Below, piece by piece: positions 8,495-64,000 of a stretch of DNA of 64,000 nucleotides. Positions within the stretch are counted from its first letter, which is position 1; every line of letters starts with the position of its first letter. The position numbers and the translations under genes were made by a program. The stretch is from Takakia lepidozioides (lineage: Eukaryota; Plantae; Bryophyta), in NCBI GenBank assembly GCA_030704615.1, contig CM060733.1:49166001-49230000 (forward strand), given 5' to 3'. The notes beneath the pieces are model-generated. The model saw only the letters and a list, made by a program, of their open reading frames with translations, was not told where the DNA came from and did no database searches.

Positions 8495-10805
8495 TCACCA
8501 GTACTCCCCACAGGAGCAAACCCCATCTTCAAAGTTGTGAAAGCGATTGCCATCCCGCACAACGATTGCTCGCCCAACAATCTTCGAGATGAGCTTGGTG
8601 GCCATGTGGCAGTCACCACACACCCGAAGGTTCTTGATAACACAGAGAGGCGTCCCAGGGGCCGTGCTGATCAGCCCAAAAGCGATGGCCAGCTTCTCAC
8701 TGTGATGGCAAAGAGAAATTTCCTTTTGCTCCTCCACGTCATGCAATACAAAGCGTGTGTCAGGCACATACCCTGCCTCCTTCATCAGCCCAGACAATCT
8801 TCTCAGCTCAGCATGAATTTCCTCTATTTGTGGATGCGAACAAAGGTGTGCACCCCATCGCCGACCTCAATGTAGCAGTGACCTGGCTCTTTGGTGACAC
8901 CTCTGACCTTCATCATTTTTCTCACCTTTGCAGTATCATCCCACCTGCCAGCTGCAGCATAGATGTTCGACAGCGACACATAAGTTCCCGCATCCTGTGG
9001 ATCCCACTTGAGAATACATTTTGCTGCACGTTCTGCCACCTCCACATTGCCATGAATTTTGCAGGCACCAAGCAAGGCCTTCCACACTACAGCATCTGGT
9101 TTGCTTGGCATTTTGCTGGTAAAATCCTCTGCCTCATCCAGTCGCCCCACACGGCCAAGAAGGTCCACCATGCAGCCAAAGTGCTCTGCTGCAGGAGTAA
9201 GGTTATGATCTTTACTAAGGGATTCAAAGTAGTGTCTGCCTTCATCCACTAGGCCAACATGGCTGCATGCAGAGAGAACACATACAAAGGTGATATTGTC
9301 CGGCTTCAAGCCTTCCATTTGCATTCCTTCAAATAGTTGCAGGGCTTCCCTAGAACATCCATGCTGGGCATATCCTGCCATCATAGCACTCCATGACACC
9401 ACATCTCGTTCAGCCATATTGTCAAACACTTCCTTGGCATCCTTGATGCTCCCGCATTTGGCATACATGTCCATGAGGGTGTTGTCAAGAATGGTATTTG
9501 GTTGAATTCCAGCTTTCATGATGTCTGCATGTACCTTTTTGCCCTTTTCCAGGGCTGCCAGACTCGCACACGCATTGCAAACACAAACATATGTAATCGG
9601 GTTCGGCTTCACCCCTTCCCGCATCATTTGCTCATAGGTCTGCAAAGCCTCCAGCCCACTCCCATGCTGGGTATATCCTGCAATCATCGCACTCCATGAA
9701 ACCACATCTCGTTCAGCCATATTGTCAAACACTCCTCTTGCATCCTTGATGCTCCCGCATTTTGCATACATGTCCACAAGGGCAGTATCCAGAATGATAT
9801 TTGGTACAATCCCAGCTTTCATGATATCACAGTGGACCTCTTTCCCCTTCTGCAGTGCTCTCAGGCTTGCACATGCATTGCAAATGCAAACGAACGTGAC
9901 CAGGTCTGGCTTCACCCCATCCCCCATCATTAGTTCATAGGTCTCCATAGCCTCCATCCCACGCCCATCCTTGGTATACCCTGCAATCATCGCACTCCAC
10001 GAGACCACATTTCGTTCAGCCATATTGTTGAACACTGCCTGTGCATCTTTGATGCTGCCGCATTTGCAATACATGTCCATGAGGGTAGTGTCCAGAATGG
10101 CATCTGGAACAATTCCAGCTTTCATCATGTCAGCATGGACCTCTTTGCCCTTTTCCAGCGCTGTCAGGCAGGAACATGCCTTCAGAATGCAAGTGAATGA
10201 AACCTGGTTGGGCTTCACCCCTTCCTGTATCATTTGCTGATAGGTCTCTATAGCTTTTCTACTATACCCCTGCTTGAAATATCCTGCCATCATTATATTC
10301 CATGAATAAATATTTTGTTCAGTCATTTTGTCAAACACTCGGTGTGCATCCATGATGCTCCCACACTTGACATACATGTGTTGTGTAGAAACACATTTGC
10401 CTTGAATCGACTTTGGATAATGTGGGCATGCACCTGCTTTCCTGCTGCTAGGCCATTCATCTTCATGCACTTATCCAACAGACAGACATAGGTAGTTAAG
10501 TCTGCCAAAATGCCTCCATGCTCCAAAATATGCAGAGCCTCGTTCAGTTGTCCTGCCTCACATAGTGTCCTCACATGTCCACAACCACCAGAAGCGATCT
10601 TATACACTCCCTTTCTTGGTCCTCTTTCGGAAACGGTGGTCATGGAGGAGGTATGTGACTTTATCAAGTGTACTGCTGCTTCTGCTTCCAGTTCACCATC
10701 TACACATGCAGCCTTGTGGCTATCAATCCATAGTTGCTCTTTGGTACTCGTGGGCTTGAGATCTGGCCCTCTTGGATGGATCTGGACCCACGACCTAAAA
10801 TGCAT
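8495..10805 (-). pseudogene. PLS-class PPR-E-DYW RNA-editing factor with two frameshifts
   Basis: PLS triplets with 303-bp period (MYxKCGSIxDA..VFDNMAERDVVSWSAMIAGY), E domain, PG box [10 protein letters not shown], and DYW deaminase HHSEKLA...CGDCH...CSCGEYW. It is split over three frames (10805-~10378, ~10377-~8840, ~8840-8495). Confidence 0.9.
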
Positions 10806-28712: not shown

Positions 28713-30977
28713 ATGATGTTTATAAGCCTGGAGTTTCCAGCAAGATATCTGACCCACCAGCAGCTGCACAGACGGGGTGAATTGCTCGGGGTGACGTTTT
28801 CGTGCACCTACCATAAGTGCAGAAACGAGTGCCTTTGGATCGAGGGTGGGTTCAACCCTTCTTGGGTGAAAGCAGAGCTAGCCGCCATGGTACAAAGTCG
28901 AACACAATGCGGTGATGTGAGAACGCTACATATGGCAGGACGACGGAAAGAGGCCTTTCACATGTTGGACCAACAAGGCAGTTCTGCAGACTCGGATACT
29001 TATGTTTCTCTCTTGCAGGAGTGCATCAACATGCAAAACCTAGCAAAGGGAAAACATGTGCACGCCCACATCATCCGGAGTGGATTCAAACCGGACATCT
29101 TTCTATTCAACACCCTTGTCAACATGTATGCCAAATGCAGGAGCGTAGTGGATGCACGCCAAGTTTTTGACCGAATGCCTGAACGAGATATGTATACATG
29201 GAATACAATGATAGCAGGATATGCCAATCATGGCTGTGGTAGGGAGGCCTTAGACATTTATAAGCAAATGATGAGTGAAGGGGTGATGCCCAACAAGGTT
29301 ACTTTCATTTGCGTTCTCAAGTCATGTGCCAGTCTGGCAGCCTTGCAGAAGGGCAGAGTGGTCCATGCTGACATAATCAAAGCTGGAATTGCTGCAGATG
29401 TAGTTCTCGAGACCGCCCTTGCTGATATGTATGCCAAGTGTGGGCGCATGAAGGATGCACGGCAAGTGTTTGACAGTATGGCACAACGAAATGTGGTCTC
29501 ATGGAATGCAATGATTGCGGGTTATTCTCAGCATGGGCGTTGTAGGGAGGCTTTGGAGATGTATGAGCAGATGATACAGGAAGGTGTGACACCTGATGGG
29601 GTCACCTTTGTCTGCGTGCTCAAGGCATGTGCCAGTTTGGCAGCCCTGGGAAAAGGCATAGAGGTGCACTCTGCCATCACCAGAGCTGGAATTGCGAAAA
29701 ATATCATTTTGGAGACAGCCCTTGTCAACATGTATGCCAAATGTGGGAACATGAGAGCTGCACGCCAAGTGTTCAGCAATATGGCTCACCGGAATGTTGT
29801 GTCATGGAGTGCAATGATCACAGGGTATGGTCAGGACGGGCGTGGTAGGGAGGCGTTCGAGATGTATGAGCAAATGAAAAAGGAAGAAGTGACAGCTGAC
29901 AGGGTCACATACATTTGCATTCTCAATGCCTGTGCCAGCGTGGAAGCCTTGGAACAGGGCAGAGTGGTCCATGCTGACATAGTCAAAGCTGGAATTGTTC
30001 CAGATATCGCACTGGAGAATACTCTTGTCCACATGTACGCCAAATGTGGTAGTATAAATGAGGCGCGTCAAGTGTTTGAGAATATGGCTGATCGAGATGT
30101 GGTATCATGGAATGTGATTATAGCAGGATATAGTGAGCATGGGTGCGGTAGGGAGGCACTACAACTACTTGAACAAATGCAAGAGGAAGGCTTGAAGCCT
30201 GATGTGGTCTCATGGAGCGCAATGATCACAGGATTCACCCAACATGGGTGTTGTAGGGAGGCTTTGGACATATATGAGTGTATGATACAGGAAAGGGTGG
30301 CACCTGACAAGGTCGCTTTTACGTGTGTTCTAAATGCATGTGCCAGCCTAGCAGCCCTGGACAAGGGGAAAGATGTCCATGCTGACATTATCAAAGCTGG
30401 AGTTGCGCATGATATTGTTCTAGAGACTGCCCTTGTCAACCTGTATTGCAAATGCGGGGACATGAAGGATGCACAACAAGTTTTCGACAGCATGCCTCAA
30501 CGAGATGTTTTCTCATGGAGTACGATGATCGCTGGGTACAGTCACCAAGGGTGTGGCAGGGAGGCGCTCGAACTTTTTGAACAAATGAAACAGGAAGGCT
30601 TGAAGCCAGATGGTGTCACCTTGATGTGTGTCCTCTCTGCATGCAGCCATATGGGCCTGGTGGATGAAGGCGCTCACTACTTCGGTTCCATGAGTGGAGA
30701 TCATGGCGTCACTCCGACGGTGGAACATTTTGGATGCATGGTGGACCTTCTTGGACGCTCCGGCCAATTGGATAAGGCAGAGGACTTAATTAACAAAATG
30801 CCAATTGAACCAGATGCTGGTGTTTGGGGGGCATTGCTTGGTTCCTGCAGAACTCATGGTAATGTAGAGATTGCAGAACGCACGGCAAAATGCCTATTAA
30901 AGTCGGACATTGGTCATGGCAGCCACCCAGTTCTTCCACTCTGTGGTAAAGATGAAAGGCCTACGCAATCATTGTAA
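28713..30977 (+). CDS. PLS-class PPR protein with truncated E region and no DYW
   Basis: 754-aa single ORF of PLS triplets ending in L2-S2-E1 (GVWGALLGSCRTHGNVEIAE) and then a divergent tail. An alternative start lies in GCCGCCATGG at 28887. Confidence 0.9.
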   Translation: MMFISLEFPARYLTHQQLHRRGELLGVTFSCTYHKCRNECLWIEGGFNPSWVKAELAAMVQSRTQCGDVRTLHMAGRRKEAFHMLDQQGSSADSDTYVSLLQECINMQNLAKGKHVHAHIIRSGFKPDIFLFNTLVNMYAKCRSVVDARQVFDRMPERDMYTWNTMIAGYANHGCGREALDIYKQMMSEGVMPNKVTFICVLKSCASLAALQKGRVVHADIIKAGIAADVVLETALADMYAKCGRMKDARQVFDSMAQRNVVSWNAMIAGYSQHGRCREALEMYEQMIQEGVTPDGVTFVCVLKACASLAALGKGIEVHSAITRAGIAKNIILETALVNMYAKCGNMRAARQVFSNMAHRNVVSWSAMITGYGQDGRGREAFEMYEQMKKEEVTADRVTYICILNACASVEALEQGRVVHADIVKAGIVPDIALENTLVHMYAKCGSINEARQVFENMADRDVVSWNVIIAGYSEHGCGREALQLLEQMQEEGLKPDVVSWSAMITGFTQHGCCREALDIYECMIQERVAPDKVAFTCVLNACASLAALDKGKDVHADIIKAGVAHDIVLETALVNLYCKCGDMKDAQQVFDSMPQRDVFSWSTMIAGYSHQGCGREALELFEQMKQEGLKPDGVTLMCVLSACSHMGLVDEGAHYFGSMSGDHGVTPTVEHFGCMVDLLGRSGQLDKAEDLINKMPIEPDAGVWGALLGSCRTHGNVEIAERTAKCLLKSDIGHGSHPVLPLCGKDERPTQSL

Positions 30978-32458: not shown

Positions 32459-35165
32459 CTGAATTGCAAGCAACATAAGATACTTAGCTCCAGGCATAAT
32501 GAAAGTACTTATTACATGTAACTTGAGCTCCCAACCAATGCCCAATCCAACCTGTTAACACGGACATCCCTCCAAGCCTCAAGGTATTACAAACAGCAGA
32601 AAGACACTTGTGGGGCAAACGATGGTAATGTCAGAAAATCTCCATATCCCACTGCCTCCCAAGATCATTCCCCTAGTCCAAGGACAATCCAGAACTTCCA
32701 TTTTGATTCAAACTTTATGCTATGCTAACTGGCAGTCAAACTCCACCACTCTTCACACTCTTTTAAGAGAAAAATAAATTCTGAGGTATTGAAGAAGGAG
32801 GGTACATTGATAACATTCAGAAGCAAGTGACAATTATATGTCATGCATGATCTAGAGAAAGACAAACTAATAGAACTCAATCTTTTGGTGATGATACATA
32901 TTGTCTTGTAAGGGTTGCCTATCGCAGCCAGGAAAGCTCACTCTGCATCCAGATTGACTCTAGTAAGATCGAGCTCTGAATGTCGAGAATTAATTCTGAC
33001 ACTGGGATGATTGTCTTCCTTGCTGTCGCTTGATTCAAGCGCGTAAACCTACTCACGAGACAGTGCCTTGAGCATCCACGAGACTCTCGTTTGGTTCGAA
33101 AATAGAAGAGAAATGAAATGGTGCTTTATAACGTCCGCGGAAAGCTCCTAGAGAGAAAGATTCAGAGTATCCGTATGTCGTAACGTCATAACCATGCAGA
33201 ACTACGGTCTCCCTGACGTAATTAAGACACCAACACACTAAAACCTAACCTAGCAGGGCCTTACAAATTTGTAAGATACCTGCCACCCTACCTGCCACCC
33301 TAGCAGGGCCTTATTTGCAAGGTACCTCCAAAAACAGGAGGAAAGTTTTGCTCGGGAACGTACCTCCAAATACAAAGGAAAAATTATTAGGTCAGGTTTT
33401 TACGACGGAGGAGAAGATGCTAGATGCCATGTGATATATACATACATGTCTACATAGGTGAGTCTACATAGGTTTGTGGAAGTACATAGGATCCTTGACA
33501 GGATCATAAAGCACTGCGCACTGCCAGATTCTTTTTTTGCAAGTGCTAATTTATGATCGAGGAATGCCCTCCACTCGGGGCCTTCCCCTATACATTACAC
33601 TGTATGGTCGGTCTTGTTCGATCAACGCATTGCTCCAACAGACGAGTGTCTCTCATTGTTCTCTCAGTAAAGTTGTGTGTGGTAGACTTGATAGAAGTTA
33701 TATACCAAAGTCTGCAAGGAGAGTCATCAGTTGGTGGGAGGACCATGGCTGCTATGATCAGTTGCAGTGGTACTGGGTTGAAGTTAGGGGACTCTGCAAC
33801 TAGGGTTCTATTGCCCCGGGACGACCATAGCCTTCAGAAACAACAACACACCAGATTGGGACCGGTTTACTTCGCGAAGCGCACTTGCCGATCTCACGTA
33901 AGAAACTAACACCATACAAATTGATCATACAAATTTGTATATAATTGATTTCGAGTGATATATCGGTACCGTGCTAGGTCGAAGGTCAGTAGTGAGTAAC
34001 CATTATATCTGATGGATCCTATCGTAGGAAATGCTTGTTGACGTTACAAAGACAAGTACTGCAAATGTACTGCAAATTTTGTTTATCAATACTGAAACTC
34101 GTAATGCTGTTTGCCCGCGAAACAGCTACTTGCAAATTCATCTGTTTGTAAGAGAGGCCTTGGTGCAGTACCAGGAGACCCTTACTCACTTGACCACAAC
34201 CAACCCAAGAGGCATATCGTTTGCCACCTTAATGTTCTTCTGGTCATGTTCTGCGTTAAACAGGTCAATAAAGATATCTGCTACACAAGATTAACTAGAA
34301 GATTTTCCTTAGGTCTAACATTTGAACTGGATTCTCAGTTCCCTTATAATCTAGGTAACATGCGGTGTCTTTTGACCATCGAATTGGGATCGTTAAGTAC
34401 GCAGCTGTGAATTTATTGGCCAATTCCACTAATGAATTTGTGATATATTTTAAGCTTCTCAGTACAGTCTCTGATCTCTAGAACACGTGACACAGATGTT
34501 GAGAGCGATGTCCAGAGTCTGCCATTGACTATCTTGTTGTTCGGATTTCGCCCGTCCTTTCATTGCAAACGAGATCACTTCCTTCTTTATAATTAGTCTA
34601 CTTGGGGACACATACGACACAGCCTAATATGACATAGCCACAACGGACTGGGGTGGCTTATAAATCTAGCAGTTCTTCACTCAATAATGAACTGTGGACT
34701 CCTCTCAAACGATATTGCTACTGGAGCAGCCATAATACAAAATGAACTGAGAGGAATAGTATATCAGGCCGAGATCAAGACAAGACGGCTGTCATTTGAA
34801 GTCGAGGACTGCAATACATGCTCTCACCAAGTCACTGGAAATCCCAAAAATATGTAACATAATTATGTATCATGTGTTTTCACTCTCATTGCTCCATGGT
34901 ATATGGCAAAAATCTCAAGCGTGTCTCAAGACTTCAGGACTCTGATCACCCGCTTAACATACCGCTTGATCACCTCCTCGGGTTGACCTTGCGTCAGCCG
35001 GTTTTAGTCGCTTACAACACTTCCTTACACGTGCATTACTTTACTATGAATTCAGGATTGGAAAACTTTCTTCTTTCCCCCCAAACATGGGACAGCTCTA
35101 AGGGATTCAGAGCAAGTGGGATTGACGGAATGCTTGTGTGTGTATTGTAGAAACGGACTTGTCAA

Positions 35166-38100
35166 ATGACGATCCGAGCAGGTCTGATCAATGACGATTC
35201 TGTTGAGATGCGCTCTATGAATCCTATACTGCTGCCTGGCGAGGGAGGTGATCCCTTACCATCTGCACGGAAGAAATTACTCAGGGAGGTAAGCACAGGA
35301 GGCGCCGTCGGGCCGATAGTGGACGAGGACCACCCCATAGCAGCTATGGCCAAGCTTGTACAAAAGGAGATGAAGATAATCTACTTGGCATCATGCAATG
35401 ACATACCTTCTACGATTATTCCCTTTTGGTTTGTTGGCATCAACATGCTAGCAATGCAACCCCACATGCAGGGGTAAGTCCACAATCTCAAGGGCAAGAC
35501 TTTTGGTCCTCGATTAGGTTTTGAAAGCACATTGCGTCTGTTTACTTAAGAGACTTAGTGAACGTGATCTACAATTACAAAGGTGTCCTTAGTGTAACTA
35601 CGGGATACGTCTTAGTTTGTATCTTAATGTATACGTACCTTGGAGGTAATATCTGCAGCTGGAGCTCATCGCGCCTTGCAGATGTCACGGAAGCTGGTGC
35701 CTACAATATAGAAGTATAAGGGAACTGTACAAGCATACTGGGAAGTACTGCACCATAATTCGGACATAAATCCTGTGTTACTTGGTGATCATATTTATGA
35801 AGTGGGGTACGTACTCCGGAAACTTCATAGCGTATAGTGATAGTCCTGACAGCTGCAAGTGCATCTAGTGATGATGATCTCGACCACGGAAGGGCCCATA
35901 TTTCTCCATCCGGCACTAAAAGGTAGTGAGACTAATCCTAGGCTTTTGATTGCACCCTTGGTAACATCATCCTCTCACATAATGCTTTCTTTGTATGCAG
36001 ATTAGATCAACAATTTTGGATTCATGCTGCAGAAACGTTTGGTAAGGAAGTTCTGTATTCGTGGCTGTACCTCTACACCTTCAATCTCGCCAATCAATAC
36101 GTTGGTGGACCGGATGACCTGATCGACAAGCCATGGCGTCCCGTCGCTTCGGGTTTAGTTTCTCGGGAAGGGTGTCTCAGTCGCTACATCTTGATCAACT
36201 TACTCTTCAGCTTTGTAGGCTGGCGTGTATGATATAAGAATTCTGTTCAAATAGATATTATTTGGAGAGAAGGTTTCTATGCGAATCTCCTTACTAGCAT
36301 ATAGGGAGATCCTGAAGTCGTCTCAAGTAATCGGAAAAGCTCGCTGATATCTCTAGTGAAGCCAGATCAGTTTTAAATAGTTTAAGCCTTCACACTAACT
36401 AGATTATAAAGGCAATTTATTGTTTCCTCAACTGAGTAAGTGTCTAGGCAGTATAGTAGCATCTTTTAATTTTAGGAGTGCCTACATGATCTAGATTTTT
36501 TTCCAATGAATGAAGACTCTAACCGCTAAAGATATACTGAGTCTGCAAGGTGTGTCAAAGTGTCCTGAGATATCATCTGGTAATGGATTTTCTACTATGT
36601 ACTGAATGTTCAAACTTCAGCTGTTTCAGCGGTCGTGACAGTAACAACCCGGGTTGCGGTCTCGTGCTTGCGGCAGATGGGAGTGCTGCACTGGACATTG
36701 ATGTGGCAAGGAATGGTCCTTTGGGGCCTTCTAGGCAGAGGAGGGGAATTCCTCAGGTGTGGGGAAAAGTCTTCTGATGTGGGTCGGCACTACCACAATT
36801 ACCGCTGTGTCAGGAAGTATTGCAAATCCTCTGACAGGTACACTATCGTACTACCAAGAGGCCCTGCCAAGATTTCCCAACTGTTATGTTTGGCATTATG
36901 CTTAGAGGCAATGGGTACATGGATTAGTTACACCTAGTACCTGGTGTAATGAATGTATGAAAAGCTCGCGAACACCTTGTACAGTCTAAACTTTCGCGGA
37001 CTAGCTTCGCCTTGCAGCAAAATTGGGAGGGCCATGTCCTAGAGCGGTCCCTGCAAGATCTAGTCGTGTACGTATCCTGTTCCAAACAATTCTAAATGTA
37101 CAAAAGTTCAAACCAATCAGCTCCTAATATCATTTGTACAGACTCTATATCTTCTTACAGTTGATAAATGTGGGAATAGACAAGTTGGTGTGGTGGGCAC
37201 TGACAAGAGCAGCCCAAACTGCAAACCACCATTGGAGTCAGGTCAGTGTCTGAGTAATCATGATCACTTACAGCATGGACAAGGAGAATGACTATTTTTT
37301 TTTTCTGAATGGATGTAGGACTTCAGAGACGTGGCTGGTGATACCAAAATTGGAAGAAGAACGTTTCCAATGATATTTGGAGATGATCTAGCTCGGAAAA
37401 TAATGGCATTCATCTTTCTCATGGATCCGCTGTTCACGCACTATGTTGTCATGAAGGACTCTTCATACTCTACTCCACAACTCATCTGTGAAGCTATCGG
37501 TGCCATCCTGTCCGGATGTCTGGCTTACCGGTACGTCAGGCATCACCATATTCTCTGTGTGAATTATAGGATGAACCCTTGCAGAGCGGATTAAGTTCTT
37601 TTCTAATCCATATGGCCACTAGACTCCCCTGTAGCGCTAGGGTTTCCATTATGTATCACCGCCCGTGTTGGACTATTCACAGAAACGAGAGTTTATCTTC
37701 TCACTGATCTCTTTTGCGAGCTTGATAATTTAGGATTGAAAGGCGGTGCAATTTCGAGACTAGGTATTATCTCTAGAGAGTTGAAGCTCAGTTGAAGCAA
37801 GGTGGGTCTCAGTAGACATTCACATTAGTCCTATCCTCAAATATGTTAAAGCTGATATAATCTATTGTTGCACCAGGGTCTTAGAGAAAGTGAGGTGGTA
37901 CGAAGTCTGACATAAGCAGAATGTAAGATGGTAATAAGTTCTCTTTCGGCCAAGTTTAACTGGTGCAACAGCTATCACTAAATGAGTTTGCGATTAACAT
38001 AACACCGTTCGGCATAAATACCTACGTTGACACTCACATGCAAGTATTGACATACAGTGACATGATGTATTGTCCGACATGTTGCAGAACCCTGAGCTAC

Positions 38101-38183
38101 AGGACCACATCACATACCATATTTGGCTTTCCCTATTTTGGCACAACTTCAACTTTTTGACCATGCCTGGGTTTCTTCTCTAG
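35166..38183 (+). CDS. UbiA-superfamily intramembrane prenyltransferase/terpene-cyclase-like gene, microbial type, possibly degenerating; exons ~35166-35473, 36001-36226, 36677-(36756 or 36816), (37142 or 37161)-37241, 37319-37530, 37877-37889, 38088-38183
   Basis: YLYTFNLANQYVGGPDDLIDKPWRPVASGLVS (motif I), Q|DFRDVAGDTKIGRRTFPMIFG (motif II), and C-terminal LAYRVLEKNPELQDHITYHIW, with hydrophobic helices and GT-AG introns. The middle exons are ambiguous and show apparent frameshifts. Confidence 0.75.
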
Positions 38184-51857: not shown

Positions 51858-53295
51858 CATGACAGACAGTGGTGCTTATGCATACAAAGTCATGTTTTTT
51901 GGACTATGTAATGCACCAGCAACTTTCCAAAGAATGATAAGTAAATCTTTCAATGAGTATTTGGATGATTTCATGCACGTGTTCTTAGATGACTTCAGTG
52001 TGTCCAGCTCTAAGAATGAGCACTTGCAGAAGTTGGAGTTATGTTGGCCAGATGGAAGATGAGAGGTCTTGGTCTGAATCCAGAAAAGTGTATTTTCTGT
52101 GTGAGCTCAGGGGTATTTCTGGGATACATTGTGTGTAAGAAAGGACTGTTTGTGGCTCCTAGAAAGACTGAGGCCATTAAAGCATCCCCACCACCAGTAA
52201 ATGTTAAGGCTCTAAGGAGATTCCTTGGACAAACCAGCTACTACAGAAGGTTTGTCAGGCACTATGCATAGATGGCAGCACCATTGAGCAAGCTTTTGAA
52301 GAAGGATGCAGTGTTTGCATGGACGGCTGAATGCCAACAGGCATTTGAGGCACTTACAATGTCAGTAATAACAACACCTGTGTTGATTAACCCTCACTGG
52401 CATGTGGTATTTCATGTACACTGTGATGCCTCAGGAGAAGCATTGGGGGCTGTGTTAGCCCAAAATGTCACATGAAACATAGATTCACCTGTGTATTATG
52501 CTAGTAGATTGTTGAACAGTGCTGAGATGAACTATAGCACTACTGAAAGAGAAGCTTTGACAATGATTTATGCAGTCAAGAAATTAAGGCATTATCTACT
52601 GGGAATAAAGTTTATGTTTTATATGAATCATCAGGCTTTGATTTATCTAGTGAACAAGCCTTTGCTAAGTGGCAGGATAGCAAGATGGTTGATTATCTTG
52701 CACGAGTTTGAATTCGAAGTTGTTTATCAGCCGGGATGATTGCATCTTGTGGCAGATCACTTGTCACACCTTTCAACAGGAGAGCCCGCCACAGGAGTAG
52801 ACGATCAACTGCCTGGTGCGAGTTTATTCGCAGTGGAGGTGCAGGGAGCGGATGATTGGTTGGATTGGCAGTGGCCAATCAAATACTACCTTACTCATGG
52901 TCAGTGCACACCCAGTTATAAGAAGGAGTAGAGGAAAAGAATAGCTATCAAGGCATTACCATACACTATGATAGGTGGAAGATTGTATAAGCTAGGACCT
53001 GATGGAGTTCTTAAACGATGCTTGTACCACCATGAGGTTAATAAAGTTCTGGAAGAAGTTCATAAAGGAGTGGCTGGAGGTCATTTTAGAGAAGAGACTA
53101 CCAATAGGAAAATACTACTTGTAGGTTACTGGTGGCCTACTTTATTCAAGGATGTACACAAGTTTTGCAAGAGTTGTGATGAGTGTTAGAGGCTAGGACG
53201 TTTGCAAAGATCTGGGAAGATGGCTTTGATGCCTACTGAACCATTCCAGAAATGGGGATTAGACTTTGTTGGACCAATTAATCCACCAGCCAGGA
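51858..53295 (+). mobile_element. Ty3/gypsy pol fragment (RT C-half, RNase H, integrase N-terminus), degenerate
   Basis: VMFFGLCNAPATFQR, VFLDDFSV, HCDASGEALGAVL, NYSTTEREAL, integrase HHCC region (VHKGVAGGHF...CKSCDEC) and PFQKWGLDFVGP. There are several in-frame stops and one frameshift, and both ends are truncated. Confidence 0.92.
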
Positions 53296-54306
53296 ATGAC
53301 GAGTAGGAACTTGTCAAACAGTTGGGTCATGTTCGACCATATCAAGCGAATTACAAATCACCAGTGGGTGACAATGGGTGCACATGTCTACGACACCCAC
53401 TGCAGGATGCTAATGACAATTGTTATTTGTGAGATGAAAGGAGAGGACACACAATCGGAGATGCTTCTTTGGCAAGGAATAAACGAACAGATGGCCAAGG
53501 CGGGATTGCCCCCTCCGAATTTCCGTGGTTTCATGGCGGACAACGCACAAGCAAATTGGGCTGCCATCCGAAGGGTGTACGGGCAAGACCCCAATGTTCC
53601 CATGGAAGGCAAGGAGAGATCTTGTGGGTTCCATTTTCTGCAGAGCCTTTCGCAGTACACAACCAGGCTCGTGGCGCCAGATTTCAGAGAGGAGCACCGT
53701 TCCATGTGCCTTGCGTGGAAGCGCGCTCCTACCTTGGATGATGCAGAGACACAGTTTGCATGCATACGGGCTTGGTGGACATCGTCAGGTGCTGTAAGGA
53801 AATCAGACGAGGGAGCAATGGTCAGTTGGCTAGCATGGTGGCATTATCGTTTCCTCCAGTTCGGCGACTATATGCGGGAGGTGAGTTGCACGTCCGAACA
53901 TGCTAAGTCCGAACATGCACTGGAAAAATGGCGCCGAATTACCTGTCATGAGGGGACCTATAGCCGCGGAATTCGGCACCATTTTTCGCCAGAGAGACCT
54001 ATTACCGTGAAATACGTCGTCGTTTTCCAGGTTACGGACCCTATTACCGCGAAATTCGGCGCCATATTTGCACATGTCGCTGGGAATTGGCATGAGCGGA
54101 AGACGAAATATCATGAGCACAACTGTCAAAACTGCAATTTTTCCTTCAAGGGGCCGAATAATATATTTGTTTTTCCTGACACATTGCATTAAATTATTGT
54201 ATTTTATTGTTTTTTATTTTCGAAATTTGGACTTCTGCTCATGAAAACCGATTGTCTTACTACTCCGCTCATGCCGCTCATGCTCATGAAATAGCAAACC
54301 TCCTCA
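53296..54306 (+). mobile_element. Inverted, internally deleted copy of the MULE-like transposon at 58158-64000
   Basis: 53296-53892 is the reverse complement of ~60429-61025 with about 6 mismatches. ~53903-54306 matches ~58158-58586, ending ...ATAGCAAACCTCCTCA. Confidence 0.92.
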
Positions 54307-54314
54307 TCCAGTCA

Positions 54315-57095
54315 TCATCTCCAGTCATACTCTCTAACTCCTCGAGGTCTTCTCGTAGCAGGTAATCTACTAGATTTCTTTGTGGTAATTTGTATCTCGT
54401 GTATCCCATTATGCACGGTTAGTAACTGAGAATTCCAGTCATGGAATACCCTGGCTTGTTTTAGCCACGGACGTCCCAATAATAAGGAGTAAGCCTCCAT
54501 GACTTCATCCATCTTCAACACAGTTACTGTGATCATAAAGATCATCTTCTGTATCTGTATCTTAACTCCTCTTATTAATCCCAATGGCTGTACACTTCTT
54601 TGATCTGCCATTGTTACTGTAAATGGGGCTGGTTTCATGTTACTAAGACCAAGCTTCTTTCTTAATTGGTCTGTCATGATATTTACTCCAAAACCTCCAT
54701 CTATCAGTACATCAGTTAGTTTTGTGCTTCCAATTCTCAATTGGATTACTAGCATAGAATCATCAAAGTCCATGACTATTTCTCGCCCTTCCGGCTTCAC
54801 ATTATAACTGGTCACATTGTTGTTCAGGTCTGTGTTTCCTGTCTCCTGGGCAATTCGATTGATTGCTTGATACAGCCTGTGCCTACAATAAGGTGCCACA
54901 GCCAATAGCTGTCCAATGGTAATTTCTGCTTTGGTCTGGCATATTACTTCAGCCAAAGTCTCTTCATTACTTTGCATGTCTGCATCTTCTTTCTTTCTTT
55001 CATCCTCCCTCCCTTCTTCTTCTCCATCAGAATCAGAGGAATCTGCCACAGGAATATCAGTACTCTTCTGCATTTCCCTTATGGTATCTGCCACTTCCTT
55101 GTGCAGTTCCTTCTCATCTCTCCAAGCCTCATCATCTTCAGGTATATCACTGTCACCTTCATTATCATCATCTTCCTCTACTACTGGAGGTATTAGTTTG
55201 TCTTTGCTTCTTGTTACTATCATTGTACTTACTTCTGGTACAACACATGGCCTAACCATGTGAGCTGCCACCACTGGGCCCTCATTCACATGAGCTCTCA
55301 TCTCATTCTGGTGTCTAATCCAAAATAAACATGCTGCCTTGCGATGTCCTGGCTGATTACAATAGTAACATAGTTCTTCACCATTTGGTCCTCGCCCTTG
55401 GTCTGCTCTTGGATTATTTCTGTAATCCTGATTCCCGGGTTGGTAATTCCCCCTTGGATTACCCTGATAGTTGCCTCTGGAATTTCCTTGGTAATTTCCT
55501 CTTCAATTACATCTCCCTTCCATACCATTGTTATAACCACCAGACCTACCATAGTGGTCCTGCTCATTGTTTCTTCTTGGCTGGGGCTGCACCTGATGCA
55601 CCCTTACTTGCCTAGGTTCTCTTGCAACTGTCCTTCTGTTGTAGTAACAATTCTCAGTAGAATGGTTATCCATTTTACAGATAGTACAGTGTTTCTCCTT
55701 CATGTGGCATTCTGTGGTGGTATGGCCTTCATTCTGGCACTTTGCACACCATACACCCTTCCTCCAATGTGTTGCAGCCTCTGTGGCATACTTCTTCAAG
55801 ATTTCTTCCAATCTTTTCTCATAGTTATTCCTCTTCAACTTCTCCTTTCTCTTACTCTTCCTTTTTAGTTCTTGCTCTTCTTCTTCATCTGACTCATCCT
55901 CAGAGTCCTCATCATCCCTTTTCTCTCTCCTGAGCATTCCCAATTGCTCAATTCTGTTTGCAGTTTCAAATGCCTCCTCCACTGTATTATGGGGTAACAT
56001 ATCCACTTTCTTTTGCAACTCTGGTCTTAGTCCACTCACAAACCAAGTCTTCTGTAAACCTGGTGCTGGTACTGCAGCCAGCTTTTTCATCATCAATTCC
56101 ATCTTTTCCATATACTCCTCAACAGTTTCATGCTTCTTTTGCTTTAACTGTTGTAAACTTCCATACACTTCATCCTCAATTTTACTTGTCCTGAACCTAT
56201 TTCGGAATGCTGTATTCAAGCCATTCCAGGTTAGGAAATGATTATCAGGGAATCTTGCATACCATTCACTTGCTTTCTTTATAAGTGAACAAGGAAACAA
56301 TCTCATCTTGGCATCATCGTCATTCTCATTGTTCACTATACACATGTGCTCAAATTGGCTAATGTGTACATCGGGATCCCCTTTTCCTGAATATATTGGA
56401 AAAGGTGGTTTTGCCCGTGTTGGTTGTAACGCCATCTGTGGCCCTACTTTCTGCCCACTGACAGGTGCTGGCACCCTTGCTGGTGCTGGTCCTTCAGGAC
56501 CTTTTGTTGTTGTGGTGGATCTTTCACCAAGTGGTGGCCCTTGAGCACTCCCTGCTTCTGGCCCCACGATATTCACAGTATTCCCAGCTTCAGTTGCACT
56601 ACTTCCCACACTCCATGTCCCCCCAGAGCCAGATCCAGGCAGCCCGCCTGATCCCCCTGAGCCGACACCTTCGTTGGCCTGTGATCCAAGTGCTCCACTT
56701 GATCCAGGTCCAACGGGTTGGGATGTCCTGGTTGTAGTCTCAACCTCAGCTGTTGGGTCTACTTCTTCATACTCTTCCTCTTCCAATTTCTTCTCTCTGT
56801 TTTTATCCTCCAAGTTCTGCCATTGGGTTTCTTCTTCATTCATGTAACTCAACTGCAATGGTATTGGAGAGTCTGAACTCTCCGTTGGCTCTGCCACATC
56901 CTCTCCTCCTTCTTCACCTTCCGCTTCAGAAACTGGAGTTCCTGCTTTTGGTGTTCCATGCCAACTCTTATCAAAGATTTCTGTCAAATCTTTTATCCAG
57001 GGATGTACCTCAGATCTTTCACCTCGTGATTGATCTTCTTCCCGTACCAATTCCCTTAATCTTTCTTGCAAAGAAACAGAAGGAGTGGCATCCAA
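54315..57095 (-). mobile_element. Ty3/gypsy gag-protease (one frame, in-frame stop at 55503-55505, truncated after the protease)
   Basis: Retrotransposon gag core (YSGKGDPDVHISQFE...AKMRLFPCSL...EWY...LKQKKHETVEEY), CCHC knuckles CAKCQNEGHTTTEC, CTICKMDNHSTENC and CYYCNQPGHRKAAC, and aspartic protease VLIDGGFGVNIM...LLGRPWL. Confidence 0.9.
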
Positions 57096-57856
57096 CTCTA
57101 GTTCTTCCGGTATGGGTTATGTACTCTTTGATCTTAATGGTGTGAGAGGTCCAGATGATTCCCCTATGTCTATTCCTCTCTCCCAAAGATATGGATAATT
57201 AGCTTTCAGATAGCTTTCTCTTTTTGCTGAATATCTCTGGCGTCTAGCTTCTCTTTCATCACTCATGTCCCATGTCTTTCATTTCTTTTTAATGTGGCAA
57301 TAACCAAAACTCTCTTCTGTGATATCTCTCGTATATGCCTGGGTTTCTTTCAAGCTTCAATGCACCCTTGGCTATACTTGAAGTCTCCGTTACCATATAA
57401 CCATATGGCAAACAAGTCTGGAAAGTTGTTCTTGGTGTGAGTTTGATCCACAAAATATCCTTTGGAATCCAATTCTTTACCAGTACAAGCTCTTCATGCA
57501 TATGAGTATAAACATTCACCTTTCTTTCCTCCCAGCCTTCAAACTCTACTCGCTTAATGGATAGCAATGCTATCACATAAACCAATGTTGGTAACCAACG
57601 TGCTCTTCCTCTACAGGCCACCTGATAAATCTTTATCACTCCTTTCTCCAGACCCCACTCAGGGTCAGCATCATGCACTCTCTTAAGAATGTTTTCTTTA
57701 CAACCGTCTGGCAATTCCAAAAACCTCTGGAAGAATCGTTTGGACAATCTTTCCTTCTCAGTTTCACAAGGAATTTGATTCACATCAAATTCTTTAATTC
57801 TCCATCCACCATGATCCCACCAGATGCCTGTCACATCTGGTTGTTCATGACCCAGT

Positions 57857-58157
57857 TCCCCAGTATGGTCGCCAAATGTCGCGCGGCTTTTACTCACCCA
57901 TCCCTTCGCTATCCGAGGCAGAAACTCCAAGATAGAAGAGTTGGAAATCTCTAAGCACTCAACCCGCTTAGAACAATCAGTCATGACCTACAGCTAGTGT
58001 ATCATGGGGGTGTTTCCTATTTGCTTTCCTTCCCGCATTCATGTTAGCTAGTTACCTTACTGTTGGTAATTAAGTATTAGTTTGCTTCAGTAATCTATCG
58101 GATTCCATCAACTCATCCATTCATTCCACAGCTTCACTCAGATCTCTCTACACAGTG
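57857..58157 (-). mobile_element. tRNA-Arg-type primer binding site (57874-57857) and truncated 5' LTR (ending in CA at 57877)
   Basis: The minus strand reads ...CGCGACA TT TGGCGACCATACTGGGGA, resembling the tRNA-Arg PBS TGGCGACTCCACTGGGGA of Tat/Ogre-type elements. The upstream LTR is cut at the DNA transposon end. Confidence 0.6.
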
Positions 58158-58419
58158 TGAGGAGGTTTGCTATTTCATGAGCATGAGCGGCATGAGCGGC
58201 ATGAGCAGAGTAGTAACACAATCGGTTTTCATGAGCAGAAGTACAAATTTCGAAAAAAAAAAAAAACAATAAAAAAAACAATAAAAAAACAATAATTTAA
58301 TGCAATGTGTCAGGAAAAACAAATATATTATTCGGCCCCTTGAAGGGAAAATTGCACTTTTGACAGTTGTGCTCATGATATTTCGTCTTCCGCTCATGCC
58401 AATTCCCAGCGACATGTGC

Positions 58420-58781
58420 AAATATGGCGCCGAATTTCGCGGTAATAGGGTCCGTAACCTGAAAAAACGGCGACGTATTTCGCGGCAATAGGTCTCTCTG
58501 GCAAAAAATGGTGCCGAATTCCGCGGCTATAGGTCCCCTCATGACAGGTAATTCGGCGCCATTTTTCCAGTGCATGTTCGGACTTAGCCAGTTTTCGGCG
58601 CAAAATAGGGAAATTCGGCGCCATTTTTCCAGACACTGTACCAGTGCATGTTGGGACTTAGCCAGTTTTCGGCCCAAAAAGAGAAATTCGGCGCCATTTT
58701 TCCAGACACGGTACCAGTGCATGTTGGGACTTAGCCAGTTTTCGGCCCCAAAAAGAGAAATTCGGCGCCATTTTTCCAGAA
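58420..58781. repeat. Subterminal repeats (AATTCGGCGCCATTTTTCCAG, ~60-75-bp spacing)
   Basis: The motif occurs at ~58550, ~58612, ~58685 and ~58759, with inverted or degenerate copies nearer the terminus. Confidence 0.85.
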
Positions 58782-58935
58782 ATGGCCCCACAACTGCTTC
58801 TGTTGGATCTCAGTTTGAATGGAATATTGCCTCATTCCAGGAGTTTTGGGGTGCATTTCATTACACTGCAAAAAAAAAGTCTGATACAGCAAAATGCATT
58901 TGAAAATATCCATATGGAGGATTCCGTTTGCCCCA

Positions 58936-61900
58936 TCAATGATTTCTGGAATCCCTAAGGAGGAGTTTGTGCAGCTCGTTCACGCTCAACGCCGGTGCAT
59001 GAATAAAGTCATCAATAGTCACGTTCATCCTCAACCTCTTCAGGTAAATGTAATACAGATGCTTGCACGGATAATACTTCGAACCCTTCTTTGCTTCCAT
59101 CAACGAGAAGTCCGTACAGTTGCAAGTCGGCTCCACTCCAATCGTAATTGTGTATACATCGTCGCGTACAGCCGAGCCGGCCGTTGCCATCCGATACACA
59201 CGCCCAAGGCCGGGTGGGGGTACGTCCACGGAGCTCTGAATAGTGCAAGCCATCCCAAGAGCATTGGCAATCCGAGTCTCATTCAACTTGTTGGGAGGGT
59301 GTCGTCTCTTCACTCTTCCGAATCGCATTGTGGGATGTGCAGAATTGTCCAATCCGTCTCTACTGGACCGAGCAGTCTGCAATGGCTGGGTCTGAGGAAC
59401 CGGAAATGCGTGGGCCGGGATGTCTGTGCGTTGCACCATTCGAAATCCTGCTGCAGATAGAGCATCCGCCTCATTCTGAGAGAGGCTGCAACCCGGTGCA
59501 ACAGGCCAGACGCCCGGAGGCTCCGGCATTCCCTGAATCCCGTACTTGGGCTTGCCAAATACACAGGTCATTATGTCGTGCCTACAGAACCAAAATGTCT
59601 GCGTTGTGGCGTGAGCAAATGTGGGAGTCAAAAATCTGCCGCTGAAACAAGGTGCAGGTACAGCACCGTGTGGGTTCCTCCGAATCATCTCACCACAGCG
59701 TGCTCTCGTATCCACCCGGATGGCGCAACACTTCCCTCGAAATGCCGGCAATGTCCTCGCAATTCTCCACTGTGACTCCGACACTCTTGTCTCCACAATG
59801 GGAATGTTGTATTGCTTTACTACAGATGGCTCGTTATGTTGCCGGGGCACGCGCCCTGTGCTCAAAGGAGATGGCGATCTTGAACGTGCAGGACTTGCGG
59901 TGCTCGACGAGACCTCCTCGGGCAACATCACCGGACCACGAGGGAGCGTGCGAATATTCTTGTCAGCTCGCCATGAATCCTCTTCTCCGCCAGGTGCCTC
60001 GTCAAGTCTTCGTCTCACTGGACGGGTATGAACATCTCCTTCCAAATGTTGGCCTCTTCGCAGCAATGGCGTGTCCCGAAGGCCCTCTCGCAAGGCCGCC
60101 GCCCACTTCCGAGGATTCTTCGATCTGGAGGCAGTCCGCATCAGCATTTCCTGCCTGTCCGGCCCCAAGCCCCACTGTTTCCCTTTCAAGAACTCGTTGT
60201 ACCTGCATTGCTGCATAATTGACCTCACAATGTCCTCCGTTGTGGCAGTGAGGATGTCCACCAGATGCGCCGCAGAGGAGGCACGCCAGGAAGAGTGCAC
60301 TGATTCGGCCATGTTTGTCGTGGGCATGTCGGTGTCGGAGTCGAGACACATTTCCTGCACAAGCACATGTTGAGGTTACAAGCAAGTTACAAATATGGCC
60401 AAGAATAATATCCAACGGGACGCGAATTCGTGCAACTCACCTCCCGCATATAGTCGCCGAACTGGAGGAAACGATAATGCCACCATGCTAGCCAACTGAC
60501 CATTGCTCCTTCGTCTGATTTCCTTACAGCACCTGACGATGTCCACCAAGCCCGTATGCATGCAAACTGTGTCTCTGCATCATCCAAGGTGGGAGCGCGC
60601 TTCCACGCAAGGCACATGGAACGGTGCTCCTCTCTGAAATCTGGCGCCACGAGCCTGGTTGTGTACTGCGAAAGGCTCTGCAGAAAATGGAACCCACAAG
60701 ATCTCTCCTTGCCTTCCATGGGAACATTGGGGTCTTGCCCGTACACCCTTCGGATGGCAGCCCAATTTGCTTGTGCGTTGTCCGCCATGAAACCACGGAA
60801 ATTGGGAGGGGGCAATCCCGCCTTGGCCATCTGTTCGTTTATTCCCTGCCAAAGAAGCATCTCCGATTGTGTGTCCTCTCCTTTCATCTCACAAATAGCA
60901 ATTGTCATTAGCATCCTGCAGTGGGTGTCGTAGACATGTGCACCCATTGTCACCCACTGGTGATTTGTAATTCGCTTGATATGGTCGAACATGACCCAAC
61001 TGTTTGACAAGTTCCCACTCGTCATCCTGTCGACCAGTTCGACGCCACTGCCAGGTCCACACGTGGACATTTTGAATACGAAACAACGATCTGCCTCAGT
61101 CCCTTGTCCTGGAAACCTACTTCCATGAATGTAGTCATATCCACATCGTCGCTTCACCTCCAGAATGGAGTGCATATCCGAGCCACGCCCAATTTTCTGT
61201 TTGCATGAGACAATGTGGTTTCGGACATTCGGTGAACATACGTGGGACACCGACTCCAGCAATGCCTCCATTTCCTTCTCGTCGAGAGGAACTCTATCGG
61301 AGCCGTCTTCCGACATAATTCTGGCCAATGCCATCTTATGGGCGGCTTGGAGCTGTATCTGTTTGGGTTTGGCACCCGGTCTCAACTTAACCTCCTCCTG
61401 AACGAGCTGCTCTGCTTCGTGGGCAGCCTCCCGCGAGTTCCCCCTCGCCAATTTGTGACAATGGGAACCAACGTGTATGCAAGCTCGGGTGAGGTCAGGG
61501 AAACGGTGCAACACATAGAACTGCTTGGCATTACAAACAGACATGCAGTGTGGTGGTTCTTTGCAATGCGCACACTTAAATGTGGAGTTCGGAACCTTCT
61601 CCTGAGCTCGAAATGGTTGGTGAGCTGTGCCTGTCCAATCGGTCTCGTTCCTGTGACCTCTGGATTTAAAGTGGAAGCAAGTTGGGGAGAAACACCGCAA
61701 CGCGCCCGCACAAACAACGTAGCGCACCCGCACACCATCAAGCATCTTCATGCTGGTGGTTTTGGTAACGCACCAAGGATGACCGTCATGTTTTCTATCC
61801 ATATCTGTCAACATTCCGGACGCCCTCGAGTAGTCCGCCCGAGGAGGGAACTCAAAGAAGATATTACCGTCGACGTCGGCGGGAAGGCATGTAACCGATT

Positions 61901-62528
61901 TAATTGCGAACTTGCTGTAGTCCAGCCCGGCCAGCTCCGACCGGTGTCCCTCCAGGTGAAGCCCTCGCAGAATTTCAAGAATAGATCGAACTGCGGTGCT
62001 CGTGCTGGGAATATGACTCCCTCCTCCACTGACGTCCATTGAGGACTTGCCTGATCTCCAGGACGACCTCGGAACTTCCATGACCTCGTCTGAGTCGGAC
62101 AGGTTGTGAACAACCCGGTTCTCGGTCGTCTTCATGGATGGGTTCGGCTCTGGATTTACTTCGTTGCGGACTTCTCTCTTTGAGGTACCCACTCTCTGAT
62201 TCGCGGATTGTTTCGTGGAAGGCGCCAGGATAGACGGTGCATTTGGCGGGCAAATGAAGTCCCCAACAGCCCTGTATATGACGCTGTCCGATGGTGGAAC
62301 TCGCCATTCCCTGCCATCGCCGAAATCATCGTGGAGCACAACAATACTCTCGACAACAAGGCCGTTTGAGTCCTTCCTTTCCTCCTCCAAAAAAACCGAC
62401 CCCGGTTTCAGGTGGTATCGAACGCACAGATATTTCTCCATCACCCGGCAGGTGTCCCCTCTGCACGGAAATGAAGCTCTATGCTCGTGAGGAGGGCAGT
62501 ACACTGTAGCGCTCGGGTTTTCCGCCAT
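58936..62528 (-). CDS. Transposase, ~1168 aa: GCM/WRKY-like Zn DNA-binding domain + MULE DDE + C-terminal SWIM finger; exons 62528-60441 and 60354-58936
   Basis: DGHPWC..CAGALRC...C...CAHC...C...HVGSHCH, then FDHIKR (D1), FMADNAQAN (D2), SCGFHF (CxxH), TTNMAESVHS (E) and SWIM CNCTDF...PCKHLYY. An 86-nt phase-0 GTGAGT...TGCAG intron joins the two ORFs with no stops. Confidence 0.88.
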
Positions 62529-62769
62529 GGGAGATGTGCACACAAGACTGCCAGGATGGCGTGCGGGGAAGCTCCCTGGTAGAAGGGGGTGCAGCGATGG
62601 GAATGAATGCGATGCCGATTTGTCCGAGCGACGAAGCCTGATCCAAATCCAGGGAGCCAACTATCTCAAAAATCCACAGTCAGAGTGTTAATGAACCTTG
62701 TCTCCGGAATGCGGCCCCTCGTCTTTGCGCAATAACTGCCAACGGTATGCAGTCAGAAAGTGGGGGGCC

Positions 62770-63440
62770 GTCCGGATGATGACGGCTGAAGGGGAGAAGC
62801 CGGCACCGTGCCGTCACATTACTACCCCCGAATGGAAATTCGGCACCCAATATCCAACAGAGGAAGCCCGGATGAAGTCGCCTCGGGCGCAGAGGCCGGC
62901 GCGTGTGCGACAGAGAACATCCCCTGGATGGAGATTCGGCGCCGAATTTCCATCCGGGCCCCCCAAAGGGAGTCGTGTCGGGGGGTCAGGCCGAAAACTG
63001 GACGGCATAAAAACATCCCCAGATGGAAAAACGGCGCCGAATTTCCATCCGGGGCGGTTCGGATGCAGTCGGGGAGGGGGGAGTGGCCTGCACTTGGCCG
63101 TCACATTTCAACCCCCGGACGGAAATTCGGCACCGAATATCGAACAGGGGACGCCCGGATGAAGTCGCCTCGGGCGCAGAGGCCGGCGAGTGTGCGACAG
63201 AGAACATCCCCTGGATGGAGATTCGGCGCCGAATTTCCATCCGGGCCCCCCCAAAGGAAGTCTTGTCGGGGGGTCAGACCGAAAACTGGCCGACATAAAA
63301 ACCTCCCCAGATGGGAAAACGGCGCCGAATTTCAATTCGGGGCCGTTCCAATGCAGTCGGGGAGAAGGGAGAGGTCGGCACCTGGCCGTCATATTTCAAC
63401 CCCCGGGACGGAAATTCGGCACCGAATATCCAACAGAGCG
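62770..63440. repeat. ~288-bp tandem repeat (~2.4 copies) carrying degenerate palindromes
   Basis: GATGAAGTCGCCTCGGGCGCAGAGGCCGGCG at 62871 and 63158. GGAAATTCGGCACC at ~62834, 63121 and ~63410. Confidence 0.85.
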
Positions 63441-63477
63441 GGGAGAGGCGGCACCTCTCCGACAGAGACCATCCCCC

Positions 63478-64000
63478 GGATGGAAATTCGGCGCCGAATT
63501 TCCATCCAGCAGGTAAGTGGAATCCCGGATGGATGGAGATTCGGCGCCGAATTTCCATCCAGCAGGTAAGTGGAATCCCGGATGGATGGAGATTCGGCGC
63601 CGAATTTCCATCATGCAGGTAATTCGAATACCGGATGGATGGAAATTCGGCGCCGAATTTCCATCCTACAGGTAATTCGAATACCGGATGGGTGGAAATT
63701 CGGCGCCGAATTTCCATCCTACAGGTAATTCGAATCCCGGATGGGTGGAGATTCGGCGCCGAATTTCCATCCTGCAGGTAATTCGAATCCCGGATGCATG
63801 GACATTCGGCGCCGAATTTCCATCTTGCAGGTAATTCGAATCCCGGATGAATGGAAATTCGGCGCCGAATTTCCATCCTGCAGGTAATTCGAATCCCTCC
63901 TGGATGGAAATTCGGCGCCGAATTTCCATCCTGCAGGTAATTCGAATCCCTCCTGGATGGAAATTCGGCGCCGAATTTCCATCCAGCAGGTAAGTCGGGT
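63478..64000. repeat. 53-bp tandem array (10 units, last partial) with a 30-bp perfect palindrome
   Basis: Consensus GGATGGAAATTCGGCGCCGAATTTCCATCC + TGCAGGTAATTCGAATCCCGGAT, with units starting at 63478, 63531, 63584 ... 63955. Confidence 0.95.

Follow-up and report, generated by a model that had tools for sequence, protein, structure and literature searches.

A probable pseudogene of a UbiA-type terpene synthase-like family in the nuclear genome of the bryophyte Takakia lepidozioides

The window analyzed here, a 64,000-nt stretch of DNA from Takakia lepidozioides, contains on its forward strand (positions 35166–38183) six coding pieces of a UbiA-fold gene separated by five introns. This copy is a probable pseudogene of a land-plant family of UbiA-type terpene synthases, a family whose activity is predicted from sequence. 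The reading that we prefer, and hold with somewhat more confidence than doubt, is that of a recently disabled copy (a pseudogene or null allele) belonging to a small bryophyte family of UbiA-type intramembrane terpene synthases. The homology and motif evidence supports placing the gene in a terpene-cyclase-like group, apart from the sampled primary-metabolic clades of the UbiA superfamily.

The five motifs named in the original prediction (NQYVGGPDD, QDFRDVAGD, KPWRPVASG, GRRTFP, and DHITY) are all found on the forward strand (Table 1). Relatives align to all six exons in order by tblastn, and the introns (527, 450, 342, 77, and 527 nt) are richer in AT than the exons, with GT–AG boundaries in all five. 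The pairing of NQxx[GA]xxxD with DxxDxxGD within 3 kb was recovered a single time in the window and in none of 100 shuffles, and is therefore not a product of chance. Exon 1 encodes the end of an N-terminal extension and the first membrane helix, and it closes with a phase-2 donor, GTAAGT. An in-frame, acceptor-like AG ending at 35150 suggests that a further exon is present upstream. The candidate given in Table 1 and one other, at 31680, are the only phase-compatible exon ends within 4 kb upstream of exon 1. This candidate fits in phase and make-up, but not in homology: comparison with the N-termini of the homologs recovered no sequence similarity (z = −0.35), and its homology to them was rejected on that basis. 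Three acceptor-like AGs, at 37141, 37160, and 37179, lie exactly 19 nt apart ahead of exon 4; only that at 37179 fits the homologous frame, and only that at 37141, which would move the start of the exon to 37142, fits the shifted frame. Other donor and acceptor pairs for exons 3 and 4 were rejected for their poorer fit to the spacing of the homologs.

Table 1. Features of the UbiA-type gene and its lesions, in positions of the window
Feature	Position	Strand	Remarks
Candidate upstream first exon	33745–33897	+	51 codons; Met-Ala start; transit-peptide-like make-up; phase-0 donor; speculative
Exon 1	35151–35473	+	first ATG 35166; tblastn with liverwort-type homologs E 8e-11, 33–38% identity
Exon 2	36001–36226	+	motif I and KPWRP; Pfam UbiA E 2e-4; 60–64% identity to liverwort-type homologs
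Motif I, NQYVGGPDD	36092–36118	+	
KPWRPVASG	36128–36154	+	
Exon 3	36677–36837	+	two tblastn pieces in different frames; homology changes frame inside the exon; DNA alignment
Lesion 1, frameshift in exon 3	36735–36740	+	DNA alignment
Exon 4	37180–37241	+	homology-defined; weak acceptor; 56–58% identity to homologs; ends with the Gln of motif II
Motif II, Q + DFRDVAGD	37239–37241 + 37319–37342	+	split by intron 4
Exon 5	37319–37530	+	motif II and GRRTFP; Pfam UbiA E 3e-4; 57–64% identity to homologs
GRRTFP	37352–37369	+	
Exon 6	38058–38183	+	DHITY and stop codon; about 50% identity to homolog C-termini; alternative start 38088
Probable lesion 2, exon 6	38065–38081	+	excess of 17 bases, flanked by a direct repeat of 6 nt
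DHITY	38103–38117	+	

UbiA-type terpene synthases have been defined by a motif I of the form NxxxG/AxxxD and a motif II of the form QDxxDxxxD (PMC9835599), and NQYVGGPDD conforms to the first of these. A stricter motif I, NQxxG/AxxED (PMC13483135), is not matched, with Asp standing here in place of the Glu. This column holds Glu in all 170 non-plant rows of the group (a set partly selected on motif I itself), and six plant homologs have Gly or Ala there; the residue that follows it also departs from the microbial form in the plant clade, Asn76 becoming Asp. The window does have Asp residues matching those essential in Tps1A (PMC9835599). More broadly, the microbial set shares NQ..G..ED, QD..D..GD, K77, R198, T200, R211, R256, D266, and Y270 (numbered as in the Calypogeia protein P0002), and these shared residues are carried by the window exons and mostly missing from the primary-enzyme outgroup. 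Among those present in the window, Q66, G69, K77, R198, T200, and R211 mark the cyclase-like group rather than the primary enzymes.

Profile and fold comparisons are consistent with this placement. Exons 2 and 5 fall below the cut-off of Pfam PF01040 as fragments, and the full homologs carry the domain. A structural model of a Calypogeia homolog has the UbiA fold (pLDDT 88) and matches 6M31 and 4TQ3 with a TM score of about 0.6. Against profiles of plant primary UbiA enzymes, the homologs reach only 20–45 bits versus NCBIfam cut-offs of 102–494: 19.9 bits versus 226 for HPT, 45 versus 313 for ChlG, and 19–20 versus 102 for MenA, and they fall far below the cut-off for DGGGPS as well. With scores so far under the curated cut-offs, and with a motif I that is not acidic, membership in the HPT, ChlG, MenA, or COQ2-like equivalogs was rejected. 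HPT/VTE2, HST, ChlG, COQ2, MenA, and COX10 do share the superfamily, the fold, and the DxxxD of motif II with this gene, and some share a plastid-type extension; however, they have Asp where this gene has Gly69. The proposal that the locus encodes a terpene-cyclase-like protein rather than a member of the primary UbiA clades sampled here is thus supported by motif columns, trees, and profile scores alike.

The condition of this particular copy is another matter. In exon 3, the spacing from the conserved WQ to GVGKS is 46 nt, versus 48 or 51 nt in homologs, and the conserved K141, M145, and G148 (same numbering), which lie downstream of the first lesion, fall in the other frame. In exon 6, a segment of 28 nt in relatives occupies 45 nt here; the spacer from Arg to Asp-His, which is 9 residues in every measurable homolog, is 17 nt longer, and this shifts the frame if splicing uses acceptor 38057 and the strong donor 37531. 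Read along the homology, the frame meets a stop at 37339, ahead of motif II, whose QDxxDxxxD is present across intron 4 yet beyond that stop. The original prediction had described one spliced product with all of the motifs; the exons, GT–AG introns, and motifs stand, but the homologous frame is interrupted, and the prediction made no mention of the damage in exons 3 and 6. Because of that frameshift and those 17 nt, the assembly contains no single open frame that keeps homology along its whole length. Every splice dinucleotide is nevertheless intact, and no exon contains an in-frame stop, so any decay would be recent.

An uninterrupted frame with canonical GT–AG sites is available: 368 codons are open across 35166–38183, but only if splicing uses donor 37535 and the acceptors 37142 and 38088. 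It is conceivable, if unlikely, that the family and its chemistry are as we propose and that this copy functions, either because splicing at these sites yields a working protein or because the lesions are errors of assembly. Both Asp-rich motifs are intact, and the acceptors at 37141 and 38087 appear stronger than those at 37179 and 38057; however, donor 37535 is weaker than 37531 (5/9 vs. 7/9), and the alternative splicing puts about 33 codons of exon 3 in the wrong frame. What is a hydrophobic helix (maximum hydropathy 1.24) in the homologous frame becomes a charged stretch (−1.11) with 12 charged residues; one membrane helix is lost, and with it the conserved Lys, Met, and Gly that it holds. 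We expect a protein of this kind to misfold, and the loss of the helix should invert the topology of motif II. Assembly error also sits poorly with the second lesion, a 17-nt insertion with a flanking repeat, which is to our knowledge atypical of sequencing error. The uninterrupted state of other ORFs of 2–5 kb in the window indicates that indel errors are not frequent in this region. Since these nearby long ORFs are intact, and since Calypogeia holds frameshifted and decayed copies of its own, we judge real decay to be appreciably likelier than assembly error, even with alternative splicing counted alongside the latter, and the lesions probably exist in the plant itself. A recently disabled copy, our preferred reading, offers evidence of turnover in the family and of an intron difference between lineages, and would be a poor choice for an enzyme assay.

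A search of 1.84 billion proteins with exon 2 returned 135 clusters, of which 134 are of the NQ..G/S..ED / QD..D..GD type and the remaining one is a repeat protein; no match to this exon was found in a word search, in bacterial genomes, or among PDB sequences. The two top matches (E values of 1e-23 and 1e-21), one of them from Calypogeia fissa, are well separated from the next (4e-12). The nearest relatives are genes of the leafy liverwort Calypogeia fissa and two transcripts of unlabelled source, with 57–65% identity over exons 2 and 5. C. fissa has at least six annotated copies or fragments of the UbiA-type family, and the genes examined there are intronless, versus five introns in the Takakia gene, a difference that would follow from gain in the one lineage or loss in the other. 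Full-length plant members carry an N-terminal extension of 145–155 residues, and in the first 60 of these Arg, Ser, and Thr abound while acidic residues are scarce. The sequence comparisons support a small gene family formed by these plant members. Turnover is visible within C. fissa: the annotated protein CAM6099353.1 (298 aa; CBCUJL010000014.1, L002:9580–10897) represents only the downstream portion of a gene that is frameshifted and whose N-terminal extension lies in another frame, and an unannotated, decayed, inverted copy with a stop, deletions, and a frameshift (CBCUJL010000033.1, L092:6710–7218, reverse strand) lies 2.8 kb upstream of an intact one. A P450 gene (L003:6713–8232, reverse strand) is also found head to head with the intact C. 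fissa UbiA gene CAM6092244.1, 1.8 kb away, and the two form a possible two-gene terpenoid unit.

All remaining relatives, drawn from Chloroflexota, Nostoc, myxobacteria, actinobacteria, Bacteroidota, fungi, and Symbiodinium, have at most about 37% identity over the full domain, and the best non-plant matches are proteins of Chloroflexaceae, Nostoc, myxobacteria, Streptomyces, and Saprospira. The family thus has bacterial, fungal, and dinoflagellate members and is common in fungi; the exon 2 search, with taxa looked up for about 30 of its 135 matches, yielded no named member from green algae, mosses, ferns, or seed plants. A P450 or polyprenyl synthase lies within 4 kb of 40 of 80 bacterial relatives, and one relative, in Cyathus striatus, sits between a glycosyltransferase and a polyprenyl synthase, an arrangement that appears to resemble a cyathane-type cluster.

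In a mixture-model tree, whose anchors were chosen by motif and gene context and in which characterised enzymes are absent by name and plant HPT, HST, and COQ2 are absent altogether, the plant clade is recovered with full support (100/100) inside the cyclase-like group (97/97), which stands apart from UbiA, MenA, CyoE, BchG, and DGGGPS. When exons 2 and 5 are entered in a tree as rows of their own, they group with the Calypogeia clade (SH-aLRT 99), in a position outside its intronless members or on a level with them. The best-supported sister to the plant clade is a group of Symbiodinium and aquatic-metagenome sequences (97/88), with long stems on both sides. AU tests, which used fast searches so that p-values near 0.03 are soft, reject as sister BchG (p 0.027), UbiA/CyoE, cyanobacteria (p-AU 0.026), Streptomyces, and Chloroflexota. 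They leave unrejected Dikarya, the Cyathus clade, Mucoromycota/Glomeromycota (p 0.05), MenA, and a basal position (p-AU 0.35); a sister position for the Endogonales and arbuscular mycorrhizal members is without support (p-AU 0.05). The nesting among fungal or actinobacterial cyclases that the original prediction had named as possible support is not seen in these trees, and an actinobacterial sister is among the rejected positions. The top tblastn scores hint at a cyanobacterial or Chloroflexota donor, a suggestion that was rejected, as the trees give it no support.

Because the range of the family is so patchy, horizontal transfer from a non-plant source is the simplest reading of these sequence comparisons, and on that point the original prediction of a horizontally acquired gene may stand; the plant clade is not seen nested within a named donor group but sits on a long stem beside the dinoflagellate and metagenome sister. 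The same distribution could instead reflect an ancient lineage, eukaryotic or derived from the plastid, that liverworts retained and most other plants lost, with no horizontal acquisition by bryophytes. Such a history would accommodate the dinoflagellate proteins of the sister clade, the occurrence of UbiA-type synthases in red algae and sponges, and the unrejected earliest-branching position; however, it must contend with the lack of named green-algal, moss, fern, or seed-plant members among the matches looked up and with the rejection of a cyanobacterial sister, and the sister pairing itself unites two long branches. We consider it improbable. Far less credible again is that the contig is fungal or other contamination and not plant DNA: the family is frequent in fungi, but the adjoining genes are plant-type PPR genes with the E motif, the closest relatives lie on C. 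fissa contigs of 5–24 Mb, and two of the introns exceed 500 nt. The plant homologs and PPR neighbors led us to reject fungal contamination, and with them the description of a plant gene family in a nuclear setting holds. Transfer into the plant lineage from outside, followed by duplication and decay, would account for the family as we prefer to read it.

In intact members, the N-terminal extension would serve as an organellar targeting signal, most probably for the plastid. Within the membrane, the Asp residues of motifs I and II would hold Mg2+, which would strip the diphosphate from a prenyl diphosphate; the resulting carbocation would cyclise in the membrane cavity with no aromatic acceptor, to be quenched by proton loss or by water. 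The plastid-type extension makes GGPP the likeliest substrate, with FPP or GPP to be expected if the protein is not plastidial. This scheme draws on PMC9835599 and general UbiA chemistry, and for the plant family its targeting, chemistry, substrate, and transfer are all put forward as predictions from sequence. The absence of the motif I Glu means that the chemistry of the plant clade may differ. It is even possible, though rather unlikely, that the family consists of specialised UbiA enzymes that do not cyclise: aromatic prenyltransferases (acting, for example, in the formation of liverwort prenyl-bibenzyls) or prenyl-diphosphate hydrolases releasing acyclic alcohols. The clade is long-stemmed, its motif I is altered (Glu to Gly, Ala, or Asp; Asn76 to Asp), this copy has no P450 or prenyl synthase nearby, and red-algal UbiA synthases that keep NxxxDxxxD indicate that motif and activity are not strictly tied (bioRxiv 10.64898/2026.10.28.762581). 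Against this, the motif definitions of PMC9835599 are satisfied, and one Calypogeia copy does have a P450 neighbor. The plant aromatic prenyltransferases known so far trace back to HPT/HST or COQ2, and the score of the homolog against HPT, given above, is far under the cut-off. A UbiA-type terpene synthase family remains our preferred reading.

Bacterial UbiA-type diterpene cyclases are reported to have been described by Yang in 2017 and by Alsup in 2025 (cited in PMC13483135). The bacterial group provides the best non-plant matches, and a P450 or polyprenyl synthase is found next to half of these, but none is a supported sister, and the plant copy is spliced and unclustered. The fungal enzymes Fma-TC, EriG, and Tps1A/Tps2A (PMC9835599) share NxxxGxxxD, QDxxDxxxD, the UbiA fold, and a broad clade with the plant family; identity is about 30%, however, and the plant clade differs in its long extension, in lacking the Glu that precedes the final Asp of motif I, and in not being nested in a fungal clade. 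Red-algal UTSs, for which an outside origin has been proposed and which keep NxxxDxxxD (bioRxiv 10.64898/2026.10.28.762581), and sponge AcUbiA1, with the motif NQxxG/AxxED (PMC13483135), are likewise eukaryotic UbiA enzymes that make terpene scaffolds, and their published motifs set them apart from the plant clade. The MTPSL genes of non-seed plants (Jia 2016, reviewed in PMC13364417) present a like evolutionary theme, being microbial-type terpene synthases in bryophytes, but encode soluble class I alpha-fold proteins rather than the membrane UbiA fold found here.

UbiA-type synthases are therefore known from fungi, bacteria, red algae, and sponges (PMC9835599, bioRxiv 10.64898/2026.10.28.762581, PMC13483135). 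A literature search, the coverage of which excluded most subscription journals, recovered no report of such synthases in land plants and no liverwort enzyme for verrucosane-type diterpenes. The terpene skeletons of land plants are attributed to typical TPS and to MTPSL enzymes, and the available part of a 2026 bryophyte review (PMC13364417) names no further route. What is new in the plant clade is the host group, the altered motif I, the targeting-like extension, and, in one lineage, the introns. Liverworts, Saprospira, sponges, and Hericium all contain verrucosane-type diterpenes, whose skeleton is partly shared with the cyathanes (PMC10489798). The relatives recovered here include proteins of Saprospira and Chloroflexaceae, and the groups with these diterpenes also hold UbiA-type cyclases or relatives. 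The plant family is thus a direct candidate for the synthesis of verrucosane-type diterpenes, a link that we offer as a hypothesis and that could explain unusual liverwort diterpenes. In its full form the idea is tentative, and we hold it with more doubt than confidence: that liverworts carry plastid-targeted, horizontally acquired UbiA-type terpene synthases with a motif I of their own, making cyathane- or verrucosane-type diterpene skeletons shared with bacteria, mushrooms, and sponges. If true, it would add a third, membrane-embedded terpene route in land plants.

Several other members of the family may merit attention in their own right. Symbiodinium and Effrenium carry cyclase-like UbiA members with intact motifs (P0042, P0186, and P0015) that are annotated as DGGGP synthases and are possible terpene synthases of coral symbionts. 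Members are also present in Jimgerdemannia and Dentiscutata (P0035 and P0094), representing the Endogonales and the arbuscular mycorrhizal fungi, groups that lived in symbiosis with early land plants. In Nostoc and Calothrix (L016 and L020:4870–6280), a P450 lies immediately downstream of the UbiA gene, and these pairs are candidate two-gene terpenoid operons.

The window as a whole is plant nuclear DNA, in which PPR genes bearing the E motif occur together with a Ty3 gag and further long ORFs of plant type. A terpenoid gene cluster at the UbiA locus was rejected, as no P450 or polyprenyl synthase match occurs within the 64-kb window. On the reverse strand, a PLS-type PPR gene with an E motif (8824–10805) changes frame near 10.4 kb and represents another broken gene or an assembly indel. 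A PPR ORF of 754 aa on the forward strand (28713–30977) ends at the expected start of the E domain and is possibly truncated. The region from 53266 to 63997 consists of nested mobile DNA, with the Ty3 gag at 55.5–57.1 kb, duplicated transposase-like ORFs at 53.3 and 60.4 kb, and tandem arrays with units of 53, 74, and 96 nt.
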